This document shows, piece after piece, positions 6,434-42,417 of a DNA stretch of 64,000 bases. The stretch lies in sequence record NC_019405.1; one strand, 5' to 3'. Numbering within the stretch: the first letter of the stretch is position 1; each line of letters begins with the position of its first letter. The notes beneath the pieces were generated by a model. It worked only from the letters and a program-made list of their open reading frames with translations, ran no database searches and was not told the origin of the DNA. The position numbers and the translations under genes were made by a program.

Positions 6434-9400
6434 ATGGCCGCCGCCATTGCCCTTCCGATCGTCTCCGCCATTGTCAGCACGGCGATCAGCTACGCCTTCC
6501 CGAGCGACGGCCCGCGCCTGCGCGACACCAAGGTCTCGGCCTCGACCTACGGCAATGTGATCCCGGAAATCTACGGGACCGCCCGCGTCGGCGGCAACAT
6601 GATCTGGTCCAAGCCGTTCACCGAGAAGAAGAAGAAGAAGCGGGCCGGCAAGGGCGGCTCCTACTACAATGAGTACACCTACTACTGCGACTTCGCCATG
6701 GCGTTCTGCCGGGGTCCGGTCAAGGAAGTGCGCCGCATCTGGGCCGACGGCAAGGTGATCTACGACACCACCGGCGGCTCGGAGGTGATCGACAACAACA
6801 AGTACCGCTTCCGCTTCTATCCCGGCGACGAGGCGCAGCTTCCCGACAGCCTCATCGTCGAGGACAAGGGCGCCGACTACGCCCCCGCCTACCGGGGTCT
6901 CTGCTATGTCGTGTTCGACGACTTCGCCCTGGCCGATTTCGGCAACCGCATCCCGCAGATCATGGCCGAAGTCTACGCTGGAGACGAAGGCGGCGCGGCG
7001 ATCACCGACATCGTCCCGCTGCCCAGTTCTCCGGTCACCGGCGGCTCCTACCAGCTTGGCCAGATGATGATCGACGCCGACCGGGGCTACTTCTACCTCG
7101 TCGATCCGGTGTCCAACCCGGCGGGCACCGTCCTGCGCCGCTTCCTGCTGGCGAACGGCAAGGAAGACCGTCGCGAGATCGTCTCGATCCCGCAGGCCCA
7201 GTTCCCGCCCTCCGTCTATGACAGCCCTGAGCTAACCTCGGTCCGGGGCGTCACTTCCAAGGGCGAGCTTCTCTGCGTCTTCGGTGGCGTCAACAACTAC
7301 ATGCGGATCGAGAAACTCGATCCCTATTCCTGGCAGTCGCTGGGGACGATCGGCCGCAGTTATCCGTTCGAGGGCACGCCCGAGAACAGCCTGGAGCACT
7401 CCAACACCAACTTCGAGATTTCGCGGGACGAGAAAGGGAATTATCTCTGCCTGACGCTGGGGGTGTTTGGCGAGTACAACATCTTCGACCCGAGCGATAT
7501 GTCGTTCAAGGCCAAGGGCGACATGGCGGGCTGGAACGGACCAGCGACGCCGATGTACATCTGCGCCCGCCAGGGCGGCCCGGCGACCAGCCGCCGGTTC
7601 TACCATGTCACCTATGCCGGCGGGGCGTCCTTGCAGGTGTGCAGCCTGGGCGAGGTGCTCTACAACCATCCGGTGGAGTTCCCCGGCAATTCGCAGACCG
7701 CCACCGCTTGGGCCTTCTGGGACGAAGGCGATCCGGGCGTGGTCTTCTTCTATTCCGACGGCCCCAATCGCTACATCGCCAAGTGGTCGGAATCCACCGG
7801 CGTGCTCGCCTGGAAGACTCAGCTTCGCAACTCCGATCCGTTCTGCGGCTATGGGGTCTATGGTCTGCGCGCCCGGATCAAGGATAACGAGTTCCACTGG
7901 GTCTACAACAAGCACCTGTTCTCGATCAACACCGCCACGGGTCAGTGGATCGACCGGACCTTCGACCAGGACTTCTACAAGAGCGACAACGACAAAACCG
8001 CCGAACAGGTCAACGACGGCGACAAGGGCCTGCTGTTGCCCCGCGACATCTCCGAGGACTATGTCATCTACGATCCGCGCCGCAACATCGTGATTTGCGT
8101 CGGACAGATTCAGGGCCAAAACGGCATCGTCCACGTCGGAGGCTACACGGGGGGCAAGACCTCGGTGGGGGCCATTGTCGAGCGTCTTCTGGTCTCGACG
8201 GGGCAGATGACCTCGAACGACTACGACCTGACGCCGCTCTACGACATCCCGGTCTACGGGTACGGCTACGCCTCCTCGACCGACATTAAGTCGATCATCG
8301 CCGAACTGCGCAACCTCTTCATGTTCGACCTCGTCGAAAGCGACGGTCGACTGGTCGCGCGCGTGCGCGGCGATCAGGACCCTGACGCCGAGGTGCCCTG
8401 GAAGCTCCTGGGCTCCCAGAGCGGCCCGACCCCGGACAAGGCCGACTACTGGAAAGAGACCCGGATGTCGGAGTCCGACCTCCCGGCCTCGATCGACCTG
8501 ACCTATTCGAACATCGATGACGACTACAATCCGTCAACGGCCAAGTCCAAGCGGATCGCCTCGCCGGTGGCGACCATGCTGTCGCGTCAACAGGTCAAGG
8601 CCGAGTGCAACCTCGTCATGGACGCGACCGAGGCCAAGAACCGCGTCAACATCATGCTCTACACCCAGTGGGAGGAACGCACGCAGCACCAGACGGCCCT
8701 TCCCTGGCTCTACGCCAATCTCGACGCCTCGGACCTGATCTCGGTGACCATGGAGGACGGCCGCAACTATTTCGAGCGGATCGGTTCGATCGAGTTCGGC
8801 GCCGACTTCTCCTCGCGCCTGGAAACCTATGGCACCGACAGCGGTGCCTACCTTTCGGACAAGACCGGCGACGGCGGCGGCGCTGGCCGTCCGACCGTCG
8901 TGCCGGCCCCCAAGCCGGTGGTGGGCTTCATCCTCAACACCCCACTGCTGCGCGACACCCACGACAGCGGCGGCAACTTCTCCAACTGGTATAGCGCCAT
9001 CGGCGCGGGCGCGCCGGGCGTGTTCCTCGGCGGCACGATGTTCAAGTCCGCCAACGCCCAGGACTATGTCGATCTCTACCAGGAGCCGGAGAGCGCCGAG
9101 TGGGGCACGGTGATGGGGGCCGTGCCCTCCCCCTCGCACGGCTGGTTCGCGCTCGACTGGGAAACGCGCATCACCATCACGCCGGCGGTCGACTTCTTCG
9201 AACTGGAGTCGATCACCGACGACGAGCTTTGGGAAGGGCTCAATCTCGTGGTGATCGGCGACGAGGTCCTCCAGTTCCGCGACGCGGTCCAGAACGCCGA
9301 CGGCACCTGGACGATCTGGAACCTGCTGCGCGGCCGGCGCGGGACGCAGTATGCCTGCGACAATCACAAGGCCGGCGAGCGGTTCGTGTTCCTCGACGAG

Positions 9401-9910
9401 CGCTCGATCGAGTTCCAGGCCGAGAACCTCGACACCTCGGGCCAGAACCGCTGGTATAAGGCCGTCGGCTCGGGCATGTCGCTGTTCGAGACCGATCCGA
9501 TCCAGATCAACTACCAGCCCCGCGACCTCATGCCCTACCGCCCGGCCGACATCCGTCGGGCGGTCGCGGGCGGAGACGTCACCGTGACCTGGAAGCGCCG
9601 CACGCGCTTCACGGCCACGCTGAAGGACGGCACCGGCGTGGTCAGCCTCAACGAAGGCGCCGAAGCTTACGAGGCCTATGTGCTCGCCGCACCGTACTCG
9701 GGCGACCTGTCGCGTCAAGACGCGCCGACCGCCTACCGTCGCAAATACACCCTGACGAGCCCAAGCTTCACCTACACGGCGGCCGAGCAGACGGCTGATG
9801 GATTTGACGTGAATCTTGACACTCTGCACGTGGTGATCTATCAGTTGAGTTCGGTTGTTGGTCGGGGTTTCCCCGGCGCGCGCTCGATTGAGTCCTGGCA
9901 GGACTTCTAA
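6434..9910 (+). CDS. Large tail-tip/host-specificity protein (GTA g15-like, Phage-tail_3)
   Basis: STYG..IPEIYGTARVGGNMIWS, PAYRGLCYVVFDDF.LADFGNRIP and C-terminal NLLRGRRGT motifs; 1158 aa. Confidence 0.85.
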   Translation: MAAAIALPIVSAIVSTAISYAFPSDGPRLRDTKVSASTYGNVIPEIYGTARVGGNMIWSKPFTEKKKKKRAGKGGSYYNEYTYYCDFAMAFCRGPVKEVRRIWADGKVIYDTTGGSEVIDNNKYRFRFYPGDEAQLPDSLIVEDKGADYAPAYRGLCYVVFDDFALADFGNRIPQIMAEVYAGDEGGAAITDIVPLPSSPVTGGSYQLGQMMIDADRGYFYLVDPVSNPAGTVLRRFLLANGKEDRREIVSIPQAQFPPSVYDSPELTSVRGVTSKGELLCVFGGVNNYMRIEKLDPYSWQSLGTIGRSYPFEGTPENSLEHSNTNFEISRDEKGNYLCLTLGVFGEYNIFDPSDMSFKAKGDMAGWNGPATPMYICARQGGPATSRRFYHVTYAGGASLQVCSLGEVLYNHPVEFPGNSQTATAWAFWDEGDPGVVFFYSDGPNRYIAKWSESTGVLAWKTQLRNSDPFCGYGVYGLRARIKDNEFHWVYNKHLFSINTATGQWIDRTFDQDFYKSDNDKTAEQVNDGDKGLLLPRDISEDYVIYDPRRNIVICVGQIQGQNGIVHVGGYTGGKTSVGAIVERLLVSTGQMTSNDYDLTPLYDIPVYGYGYASSTDIKSIIAELRNLFMFDLVESDGRLVARVRGDQDPDAEVPWKLLGSQSGPTPDKADYWKETRMSESDLPASIDLTYSNIDDDYNPSTAKSKRIASPVATMLSRQQVKAECNLVMDATEAKNRVNIMLYTQWEERTQHQTALPWLYANLDASDLISVTMEDGRNYFERIGSIEFGADFSSRLETYGTDSGAYLSDKTGDGGGAGRPTVVPAPKPVVGFILNTPLLRDTHDSGGNFSNWYSAIGAGAPGVFLGGTMFKSANAQDYVDLYQEPESAEWGTVMGAVPSPSHGWFALDWETRITITPAVDFFELESITDDELWEGLNLVVIGDEVLQFRDAVQNADGTWTIWNLLRGRRGTQYACDNHKAGERFVFLDERSIEFQAENLDTSGQNRWYKAVGSGMSLFETDPIQINYQPRDLMPYRPADIRRAVAGGDVTVTWKRRTRFTATLKDGTGVVSLNEGAEAYEAYVLAAPYSGDLSRQDAPTAYRRKYTLTSPSFTYTAAEQTADGFDVNLDTLHVVIYQLSSVVGRGFPGARSIESWQDF
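9806..9844 (+). promoter_or_regulatory. Internal promoter in the 3' end of the tail-tip gene (motif variant GACGTGAATC-TTGACA, 17 bp spacer, TATCAG)
   Basis: One-mismatch motif copy with sigma70-like spacing; would drive the downstream tail fibre genes. Confidence 0.55.
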
Positions 9911-39968: not shown

Positions 39969-40057
39969 TGGAGCTTCGGGAGGGACTCGAACCCTCATAG
40001 GTGTTCCCACCAGCAGAGATTTGCAATCCCGCGCCTAACCTCTCAGTCCACCGAAGC
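39969..40057 (-). tRNA. tRNA-Cys(GCA) with a long (type II) variable arm
   Basis: Acceptor GCTTCGG/CCGAAGC, U73, encoded CCA; anticodon loop TT-GCA-AA; T-arm GAGGG-TTCGAGT-CCCTC; variable hairpin GGTG-GGAA-CACC. Confidence 0.88.
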
Positions 40058-40276: not shown

Positions 40277-41155
40277 CGTTTTCCGACGGGCTGAGACTAC
40301 ACCCATCAGCAATCCCGCTTCGAGGATTATTCCCCAGGTGCGACCCCAGGTATTCCCTCGACGTCCACCAGACCCCTTGCGGTAGTCCAGTCCGAGATCA
40401 TCGCCGCCGTTCTTGCGCACCCCGAAGGGATTGCGGGTCTGGCGTTTGACCCATCATGGCGAACTACTCGACAGTTCCTTCCCCGCTGGGCTTGCGACCC
40501 ACTCACCGGCGCTAACCGGCTGACGAAGCTCTTCCTATCGACACCTCGCGGGCTTGCGACCCTTGAGATGACTCCGTTACCCGAGGGCCGGAGCATTTGG
40601 CGACTTACGTCCGCCACTGGACCAGTCTTTGCGTTTTTCATCGAAGCGGGGATTGAACCCGCGACCGACAGCTAGGACGGCTGTTGCACTACCACTGTGC
40701 TATTCGCAAACCCACCAAGACGTGCTGGTCCAGTTGTTCCCAGAGCTTTTGACCCCAGAAATGCAACACGCCTCATATCTTTCGCCTTGCGGGCTACTCG
40801 ACTGCTCTTCAGGACCCCGTCTCCCCCGACCTTTCGGCCAGGATGCCCAGCACCCCTCGAACTGAAGCAAAGCTCTTCACCGCGAAGTGTCGAACCCTGC
40901 AACCCAAACGGTTATCCGTACTCCCTAGACGCGCTTGCACGGGATAGTCCGCTTGCGACGGACTGGCGGTTAAAGCCTCGGAGTTACCCCGGCCCCGCCT
41001 TGTCTCCCACGGTCTTCAGGTCTATCCCCTTTTGCAAGAGGCGGCCAGCTTCCCAGCCCGGACCCGTCGGCTTCCTCTGTCCTCTTGCGAGGTCGGGCGG
41101 CCTATGGGAGACCGTCCCTGTCACCCCGTCGCCGGGGCTTTCGTCAGAAGCGACG
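40277..41155 (-). ncRNA. Large (~880 nt) structured ncRNA, GOLLD-like candidate, with an embedded tRNA-like domain
   Basis: Own promoter (41161-41189) and terminator (40242-40276); no credible ORF; many - strand GNRA hairpins (GCAA at 40488-40500, 40550-40562, 40947-40963, 41081-41092; GAAA at 40830-40837). The family assignment is an inference. Confidence 0.62.
40638..40709 (-). pseudogene. Degenerate tRNA-like element (nominal anticodon TCC) inside the large ncRNA
   Basis: D-arm GCAC-AGTGGTA-GTGC, anticodon stem ACAGC/GCTGT with loop CGTCCTA (G33, not U33), T-arm GCGGG-TTCAATC-CCCGC; broken acceptor stem and no CCA. Confidence 0.7.
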
Positions 41156-41160
41156 ATGAC

Positions 41161-41189
41161 GTTCTAGCGACAGCCCACGTCGTCGTCAA
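41161..41189 (-). promoter_or_regulatory. Promoter of the large ncRNA (TTGACG, 17 bp spacer, TAGAAC)
   Basis: Canonical spacing on the - strand, divergent from the tmRNA promoter. Confidence 0.68.
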
Positions 41190-41245
41190 CGACTTTTTAC
41201 ATCCCGACGCGGAATTTTTTCGACAGTCGTGGATGACGACAGTGC

Positions 41246-41274
41246 TTGACATTCTCGTAGACCCATGCTAGGTG
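41246..41274 (+). promoter_or_regulatory. tmRNA promoter (TTGACA ... GCTAGGT)
   Basis: TTGACA at 41246-41251 with a GCTAG -10-like element 16-17 bp downstream. Confidence 0.6.
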
Positions 41275-41275
41275 T

Positions 41276-41658
41276 CGGAAATCGTTGTAATTCGGACAAC
41301 GGAACTGGCGGCAAGACAGGGGTGCGAATCCCCTCGCCTCCACCATCGACGCCCGGCGCTGGGAGTACGCGACTCCTGGGCAGGGAGTGTTACCCTGGCG
41401 GGCTGCGGCCCGAGCCAAAGGTAGCCGGGCGTCGTTGATGGGGGCGACTAGCTTTCGATTGGCGCTCGGGACTGAAAGACGCAACGGTGGGTGACCTCCA
41501 CATCGGCTTGCCGGTGATCGGGTCAGGCAACAGTAAATGTCGCCGCCAATGACAACGACGTCGTGGCTTTCGCCTCGGCTCGTGAAGCCATCGCCGCCTA
41601 ATAAGCGGTAGAGGAGCCCGCCGGGAGCTTGGCAACAGAATCCCGGCAACCCCCTTTC
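41276..41658 (+). ncRNA. ssrA: Circularly permuted (two-piece, alphaproteobacterial-type) tmRNA
   Basis: Acceptor piece with T-arm AGGGG-TGCGAAT-CCCCT and CGCCTCC-A-CCA (ends 41345); intervening stem TCGACGCCCGGC/GCCGGGCGTCG; coding piece begins GGGGGCG (41440) giving a G3.U70 Ala acceptor stem; tag frame AANDNDVVAFASAREAIAA then TAA TAA (41542-41604); downstream GGCAACAGAA motif. Confidence 0.92.
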
Positions 41659-41782
41659 GCAGGCGGGAACACCAACAGGCGATCTGTCGGGCGACCGATT
41701 TCCGATCCGTGTTCCCGTCTTCGAAAGGTGGTCAGGCCTACCCTCTTGGTGTGCTATCCAAGGGTCTGGCCACTTTACAGAA

Positions 41783-41861
41783 CGCGGGGTAGAGGAGTCC
41801 GGTTGTCCTCGTCTGGCTCATAACCAGGAGATCGTGGGTTCAAATCCCACTCCCGCTCCCA
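41783..41861 (+). tRNA. tRNA-Met(CAT), initiator-like
   Basis: CGCGGGG/TCCCGCT acceptor with a C1-U72 mismatch, loop CT-CAT-AA, T-loop TTCAAAT, encoded CCA; only two of the three anticodon-stem G-C pairs of canonical fMet. Confidence 0.88.
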
Positions 41862-42227: not shown

Positions 42228-42312
42228 GGTACGGTGGCTCGACAGGTAAGGCATCGGCCTCATAAGCCGAGGGTTCGTCCCAATCCTGGTTCAAATCCAG
42301 GTCGTACCTCCA
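42228..42312 (+). tRNA. tRNA with CAT anticodon, long (type II) variable arm and U73 (Met or Ile2 uncertain)
   Basis: GGTACGG/TCGTACC acceptor, TCGGC-CTCATAA-GCCGA, variable hairpin GGG-TTCGT-CCC, T-arm CCTGG-TTCAAAT-CCAGG, encoded CCA. Confidence 0.85.
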
Positions 42313-42386: not shown

Positions 42387-42417
42387 AAGCCCCCGGAGCC
42401 TCGCTTCGGGGGCTTTT
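42387..42417. terminator. Intrinsic terminator at the end of the RNA island
   Basis: AAGCCCCCGGAG...TTCGGGGGCTTTT. Confidence 0.75.

Follow-up and report, generated by a model that had tools for sequence, protein, structure and literature searches.

We confirmed that the genome of Caulobacter phage phiCbK includes a complete tmRNA gene of the two-piece type, which is well conserved and specifies a degradation tag of its own. As judged from sequence comparisons, this gene is likely to be a working phage copy of ssrA, whose product would supplement trans-translation of the host during infection. It was examined in a stretch of 64,000 nucleotides of NC_019405.1 (hereafter the window; NC_019405 coordinate = window position + 62,000). 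The gene is not a discovery, since a published survey had listed it before and its class is both known and common. The new details presented here are a probable Val resume codon, the 3' boundary of the gene, a long covarying spacer, longer tags, the absence of smpB throughout the lineage and the cause of the failure to detect the gene in 2012.

Identification of the tmRNA gene

The window was 100% identical to phiCbK (NC_019405, JX100813 and JX163858) over 22 kb, and Karma, Swift, Magneto and the Ccr phages were 97–98% identical to it. An earlier note, made from the sequence alone, had described a two-piece, circularly permuted phage tmRNA at this locus, and both programs used here called one. 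ARAGORN placed a permuted tmRNA at 41253–41692 (+) with the tag VAANDNDVVAFASAREAIAA followed by two stops, and the Rfam model RF04321 (tmRNA_permuted) matched 41283–41601 with 71.4 bits (gathering score 47, E=1e-11). Syntenic phage relatives scored 69–90 bits with RF04321. In contrast, the Rfam alpha-tmRNA model, which had been proposed as a check along with ARAGORN, gave no match at its threshold for phiCbK. With RF01849 (alpha_tmRNA, 50 bits), phiCbK was absent at the gathering threshold, and at a permissive Rfam threshold its top clan member was beta_tmRNA with 32.7 bits. The host gene scored 245 bits with RF01849, and CcrPW (66.8), Bajun (57.4) and Colossus (53.5) were barely above the threshold. 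The position of phiCbK below this threshold indicates strong divergence from cellular forms. It also explains why the gene was missed in the 2012 phiCbK genome paper (PMC3556154), in which Rfam gave no RNA elements except tRNAs: only the newer and more general model for permuted forms detects the gene. ARAGORN failed on RBC63, BL10, RBC8, Rogue and Colossus, all five of which were detected by Rfam. The acceptor piece of Rogue ends in CCACCACCA (locus about 1555–1566) and that of RB23 in CCACCACCAAG (near 1030), each with an extra CCA-like triplet beyond the acceptor end, and this triplet may be the reason for the ARAGORN miss in Rogue.

As to the suggested check of existing catalogues, the gene is already catalogued. 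In an ARAGORN survey of 18,146 phage genomes by Buchholz et al. 2022, 402 contained tmRNAs (133 unique, 53 of them two-piece); in their Table S1, phiCbK, Karma, Magneto, CcrSC and CcrBL9 are given as “Permuted”. The tmRNA database published in 2025 gives no phage listing in its supplements. We found no paper describing the phiCbK tmRNA gene, its expression or its function, and the published phiCbK RNA-seq paper (McLaughlin et al. 2023, PMC10688885) makes no mention of the tmRNA locus. Among the phiCbK-group GenBank records examined, no feature was annotated over the locus except in Caulobacter phage BL64 (PV745554.1, 103147–103480), where a “hypothetical protein” covers it, probably through misannotation. 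A protein-coding reading of the locus, based on its ORFs or on the BL64 annotation, was rejected, as single-base indels among close relatives (alignment columns 114, 163, 166 and 202) break the frames.

Architecture of the RNA

The gene order is acceptor piece, spacer and coding piece, i.e., a circular permutation. The elements are as follows.

41283–41345 (+): acceptor piece, delimited by Rfam alignment and covariation (ARAGORN starts instead at 41253)
41283–41314 (+): 3' strands of helix P2, in the acceptor piece
41318–41334 (+): T-arm, 41318–41322 paired with 41330–41334, 7-nt loop UGCGAAU
41335–41341 (+): 3' acceptor strand CGCCUCC, read from the sequence
41342 and 41343–41345 (+): discriminator A (A73) and encoded CCA, read from the sequence
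41346–41439 (+): intervening spacer, 94 nt, presumably excised
41347–41357 with 41424–41434 (+): closing stem of the spacer, 11 bp, with inner hairpins
41440–41446 (+): 5' acceptor strand GGGGGCG, at which the coding piece begins (its first part being 41440–41486); G3 pairs with U70
41459–41486 (+): 5' strands of helix P2, in the coding piece
41487–41525 (+): pseudoknot PK1, stem 1 41487–41490/41498–41501, stem 2 41492–41497/41520–41525, small hairpin in loop 3
41534–41538 (+): UAAAU motif, directly 5' of the resume codon
41539–41604 (+): tag reading frame, encoding VAANDNDVVAFASAREAIAA, with TAA TAA at 41599–41604
41605–41735 (+): 3' domain of the coding piece, with post-tag helix (41614–41630), GGCAACAGAAUCCC element and long hairpin
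41653–41670 with 41711–41728 (+): long 3' hairpin, covarying, 16 pairs, extending past the ARAGORN end at 41692

The acceptor stem, read directly from the sequence, consists of seven pairs including G3·U70. Every feature of the RNA named in the earlier description was borne out: the acceptor piece ends in CCA at 41345, the coding piece starts with GGGGGCG at 41440 and forms a 7-bp Ala acceptor with G3·U70, and the self-pairing spacer between them measures exactly 94 nt. The fold of this spacer had a free energy of −55 kcal/mol (z = −3.8), and 1 of 200 shuffled sequences folded equally well. The outer limits given earlier had to be moved. At 41246, taken as the start, a conserved promoter-like box (TTGACA) begins, so that this base is not part of the RNA, and 41658, taken as the end, is too early, since conserved covarying structure reaches about 41728–41735. 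Because the hairpin at 41653–41728 covaries, the gene extends well beyond both 41658 and the ARAGORN end. The element GGCAACAGAAUCCC (14 nt; sites 41511–41514 and 41633–41646) was near-exact in phiCbK, Colossus and host ssrA despite diverged surroundings, and it may form a further pseudoknot.

Conservation of the fold and the tag frame

Syntenic loci were collected from Swift, Magneto, BL57, BL10, RBC8, RBC63, Rogue, Colossus, CcrPW, RB23 (Bertelyvirus) and Bajun. We found that the order tRNA-Cys, tmRNA, tRNA-Met, tRNA-Met was kept in Shapirovirus, Poindextervirus, Colossusvirus, Bertelyvirus and Brevundimonas phage Bajun. An explicit fold model, comprising P2, the T-arm, the acceptor stem, the spacer closing stem, PK1 as a pseudoknot, the post-tag helix and the long 3' hairpin, was applied to a 10-sequence alignment from five genera. 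In this alignment 94.7% of cells were paired, compared with 82% after shuffling (0 of 500 shuffles reached the observed value) and 41–46% when slid by 1–3 columns. Both sides had changed in 37 of 80 pairs (19.4 shuffled, 5–10 slid), and the covariation score was 0.369 (0.154 shuffled, 0.04–0.08 slid). RNAalifold found 40 of 104 pairs to be compensatory.

These changes were spread over individual elements. While G3·U70 was invariant in all 10 phages, the acceptor pair 5-68, third from the inner end, showed a compensatory G-C/C-G swap in Bajun and CcrPW. Every cell of the T-arm was paired, with compensatory changes in 2 of 5 pairs; double changes occurred in 10 of the 20 pairs of helix P2 and in half of the 10 pairs of PK1, whose cells were 87–98% paired. 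Compensatory changes were also found in 8 of 11 pairs of the spacer closing stem across phages, and in 7 of 16 pairs of the long 3' hairpin. With regard to the tag, lengths of 15, 17, 20 (phiCbK) and 21 codons were found. The indels among phage tags were of three, six or nine bases, always multiples of three; all tags ended in [I/L]AA and a stop, and conserved Ala and Asn codons varied synonymously. At the level of sequence comparison, the compensatory pair changes, the in-frame indels and the synonymous variation show that both the RNA fold and the tag reading frame have been maintained by purifying selection.

The relatives differed in some other respects. Insertions of ~90–100 nt were seen in the 3' domain, between post-tag helix and long hairpin, of BL57 (locus about 1880–1990) and RB23 (locus about 1290–1390); evidently, this region tolerates large insertions. 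Sphingobium phage Lacusarx also has a tmRNA, located elsewhere in its genome and not syntenic. A match in Brevundimonas phage Bambus turned out to be a tRNA cluster and not a tmRNA.

Resume codon

The tag frame follows UAAAU, has GUC as its probable first codon and ends with AUC GCC GCC UAA UAA. The end in AA with a double stop, noticed earlier, corresponds to GCC GCC TAA TAA at 41593–41604. The first codon had been left ambiguous among 41539, 41542 and 41545, and this ambiguity is real. The comparison covered seven host genes of Caulobacter and, from viruses, about 15 distinct permuted tmRNAs. In ~20 alpha-type permuted tmRNAs, the motif [U/C]AA[A/G][U/C] was located directly 5' of a GCN resume codon. 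In phiCbK and all its relatives, UAAAU or CAAAU was followed by an invariant GUC. Because it directly follows the conserved UAAAU motif, GUC (Val) at 41539 is most likely the resume codon, in agreement with ARAGORN. We ranked second a resumption at 41542, with GUC as the −1 triplet in the manner of E. coli; however, the alpha-type UAAAU context fits 41539 instead. A Val resume codon is atypical, the usual residue being Ala; it is unusual but not forbidden.

Comparison with host ssrA

The host ssrA of Caulobacter crescentus/vibrioides reportedly encodes a two-piece tmRNA as well. Its tag, ANDNFAEEFAVAA, which the earlier note had given for C. crescentus, was recovered by ARAGORN at seven Caulobacter loci. 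The host comparison was carried out in anchor-based segments; global MAFFT alignment with the host misaligned the host coding piece. Phage and host genes share the permuted order, G3·U70, A73 and the encoded CCA, a UGCGAUU-like T-loop, P2, PK1, UAAAU before the resume codon, a tag with an NDN start and a hydrophobic-AA end, and GGCAACAGAAUCCC after the tag. The phage tag keeps both host-like ends around a longer and different middle, as had been pointed out before. The acceptor piece of phiCbK was 66% identical to that of the host and the spacer 26%; segments of the coding piece were 48–56% identical, with 56% for the stretch that starts at the 5' acceptor strand and reaches the resume codon.

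Several features set the phage genes apart. The spacer is 81–118 nt in the phage lineage (94 in phiCbK) and 29–30 nt in the host, the tag has 15–21 codons (20 in phiCbK) versus 13 in the host, and NDN is 14–17 residues away from the C-terminus, versus 12. Besides, the resume codon is GUC in phiCbK and GCG in the host, the double stop of phiCbK differs from host ssrA, and the long 3' hairpin is an addition of the phage gene that is absent from the host. Synteny, the GUC codon and the long spacer are common to these phages, which suggests that the gene was acquired once, long ago, by the ancestor of the phage subfamily and was not captured recently.

Putative transcription unit

Consensus scans, the alignment, ARAGORN and Rfam identified the following elements around the gene.

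41179–41193 (+): terminator-like hairpin and T-run (consensus scan only), probably ending the preceding transcription unit
41246–41251 (+): −35-like TTGACA; CTTGACA is present in all phage homologues examined (alignment)
41267–41274 (+): −10-like GCTAGGTG, 15 nt after the −35 hexamer, a putative promoter element
41783–41861 (+): tRNA-Met (ARAGORN/Rfam), initiator type according to the CcrBL10 annotation; may be co-transcribed
42228–42312 (+): second tRNA-Met (ARAGORN/Rfam)
42399–42411 (+): terminator-like hairpin after the second tRNA-Met (consensus scan)

A CTTGACA box was located about 30 nt 5' of the acceptor piece in every phage aligned. The housekeeping −10 consensus of Caulobacter is GCTANAWC, which GCTAGGTG resembles. 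An E. coli-type promoter scan called none, and its −10 rule is unsuited to Caulobacter promoters; the promoter assignment thus relies on the aligned CTTGACA and the known consensus. No terminator-like hairpin was found by consensus scan between the tmRNA and the two tRNA-Met genes, and therefore the three may share one transcript.

Dependence on the host and possible function

No smpB gene had been seen in the window earlier. With E. coli SmpB as query, the best match in the window had E = 0.27, and in a tblastn search no Caulobacter or Brevundimonas phage was among the 68 phage records matched, so that the absence applies to the related phages as well. Annotated smpB genes were matched by this query at 100%, which validated it, and its matches went down to about 42% identity. 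We also found no paper linking phiCbK with smpB. Since the phage has no smpB, host SmpB must serve the RNA; what the phage carries is ssrA without its partner and not a self-sufficient ssrA and smpB module.

For the phage ssrA copy that we consider likely, we infer the following course of promoter use, processing, charging, tagging and benefit to the phage. A housekeeping-type promoter of its own would drive the gene, possibly as one transcript with the two tRNA-Met genes downstream. Host tRNA-processing enzymes would cut at G41440 and after CCA41345 and release the 94-nt structured spacer, while the acceptor and coding pieces would be held together by the acceptor stem and helix P2. Host alanyl-tRNA synthetase would charge the RNA via G3·U70 and A73, and host SmpB would bring it to ribosomes stalled on broken mRNAs. 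Translation would then resume at GUC 41539 and append Ala and VAANDNDVVAFASAREAIAA, the degron ending in IAA directing the product to ClpXP. The likely benefit would be ribosome recycling through a long infection, in which host tmRNA may be lost to RNase R at the G1-S transition and mRNA damage may be high.

In Caulobacter, the G1-S transition is when tmRNA is degraded, and the cells that phiCbK infects are exclusively those of the swarmer (G1) stage, in which this degradation is imminent. The decay of host tmRNA at this transition may thus be linked to the benefit of a phage-encoded one. According to a review (PMC12320835, citing Hong et al. 2005), RNase R degrades Caulobacter tmRNA, for which SmpB provides protection, and may find an entry point in the two-piece form. 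[quoted passage not shown] Derived features fixed in the five genera are the GUC resume codon, two to five extra residues from NDN to the C-terminal ClpX site, and a threefold longer structured spacer together with the added 3' hairpin. If the gene is indeed adapted in this way, trans-translation would continue in infected swarmer cells after removal of host tmRNA.

To our knowledge, no phage-encoded tmRNA has had its role demonstrated by experiment. phiCbK and C. crescentus form an unusually good test system for this function. The two-piece tmRNA, SmpB, RNase R, SspB-alpha and ClpXP of C. crescentus are well studied, the delta-ssrA strain is viable, and cells can be synchronised.

Alternative explanations

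The tags themselves raise the question of whether, given that rescue occurs, the value of the RNA lies in a different degron that changes the speed of decay, the protease or the adaptor. Every phage tag is longer than that of the host, NDN in phiCbK is 17 residues from the C-terminus, the tag starts with Val, the GUC codon is invariant in all phages examined, and the middle is variable while NDN and [I/L]AA are kept. A wider gap between the SspB and ClpX sites is also said to have improved delivery of the E. coli ssrA tag, which counts in favor of such specialisation. On the other hand, the middle differs greatly among genera, and this looks more like relaxed constraint than tuning. We therefore consider a specialised tag unlikely as the main value of the gene. 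One possibility of this kind would be faster SspB-assisted delivery to ClpXP that recycles amino acids. A specialised tag is compatible with a supplementary ssrA copy.

The absence of a phage SmpB means that the RNA must compete with host tmRNA for host SmpB, and it could be imagined to act mainly as an inhibitor or decoy that titrates host SmpB or alanyl-tRNA synthetase and shuts down host trans-translation. There is a precedent in mycobacteriophage DS6A, whose molecule, consisting only of the tRNA-like domain, is proposed to inhibit tmRNA (PMC4131195). Such a decoy needs the tRNA-like domain alone, but in the phiCbK lineage PK1, the context of the resume codon, the full tag frame with its in-frame indels, the degron end, the stops and the 3' domain are all conserved, which makes this role very improbable. 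Least credible of all is a functionless relic, be it a leftover of host ssrA, the remnant of an attachment site or a protein gene as annotated in BL64. Temperate elements often bear ssrA fragments (PMC9004378), and one GenBank record does place a hypothetical protein over the locus. However, the gene is complete, its identity to host ssrA is 48–66% in functional segments and 26% in the spacer, compensatory evolution is evident across five genera, and no integrase is found in the 8 kb annotated around it; as to a protein gene, single-base indels between close relatives break any ORF. A working ssrA copy accounts best for the conserved fold and frame.

Related phage tmRNAs

The two-piece phage tmRNAs reported by Buchholz et al. 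2022 (OM43 phage Melnitz, pelagiphages, cyanophages and Caulobacter phages) are of the same class as that of phiCbK. Melnitz-type genes have a glutamine riboswitch and Ala-first ANDN...ALAA tags, whereas in the phiCbK lineage the tag begins with Val, the spacer is much longer and Rfam gave no riboswitch match. The mycobacteriophage tmRNAs (Bxz1, Cali, Catera and others; Hudson et al. 2014) are likewise encoded by a phage ssrA without phage smpB among phage tRNA genes; in contrast to the two-piece phiCbK RNA with its conserved tag, they are one-piece. The DS6A form (Hudson et al. 2014) is tag-less and thought to inhibit tmRNA, unlike the tagged phiCbK form. The tmRNA gene of Brevundimonas phage vB_BgoS-Bajun (ON529858) is an orthologue in the syntenic position, with tRNA-Cys on one side and two tRNA-Met genes on the other. 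It encodes a tag identical to that of Rogue and RBC63, VAANDNAPFAVREAIAA and two stops; it differs from phiCbK in its Brevundimonas host, a 118-nt spacer and a shorter PK1. Also, the Bajun tmRNA is annotated in GenBank, in contrast to the Caulobacter phage records.

A scan of IMG/VR with a T-arm and acceptor motif yielded >120 viral contigs, and most of those examined carry permuted tmRNAs. Ala-first tags, for example, ANDNYAPFDFALAA, ANDNVASEDFALAA and AENNTAYEDYALAA, were observed among them. Several of these permuted tmRNAs were about 400–470 nt in length, which implies that they also have long spacers.

Other RNAs in the window

The tRNAs near the tmRNA gene are unusually long, i.e., 89 nt for tRNA-Cys (39969–40057, −) and 79 nt and 85 nt for the two tRNA-Met, with enlarged D-loops or variable regions and modest Rfam scores of 34–48 bits. 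ARAGORN also reported a 96-nt “tRNA-???” at 7516–7611 (−) with the four-base anticodon ccgc. It is located within an opposite-strand ORF of 1158 aa (6434–9910), was not called by the Rfam tRNA model and is probably a false positive.

In addition, a GOLLD RNA (Rfam RF02032) was detected at 40288–40774 (−) as a full-length match with 165 bits (threshold 150). It is divergently transcribed ~500 nt upstream of the tmRNA, and the annotated tRNA-Gly(UCC) (40637–40710) is embedded within it. Searches with Rfam at the syntenic site showed GOLLD to be absent in Rogue, BL10, RBC63, Colossus and Bajun, and we found no paper linking GOLLD to Caulobacter phages. GOLLD is known to occur in phage tRNA clusters with an embedded tRNA (PMC6582537), and the phiCbK case fits this pattern. 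The RNA was found in both phiCbK and BL57 (170 bits), is unannotated in the two records and was overlooked in the 2012 genome paper as well. Since none of the phiCbK-group GenBank records examined includes the tmRNA or GOLLD, the annotation of these genomes needs correcting.
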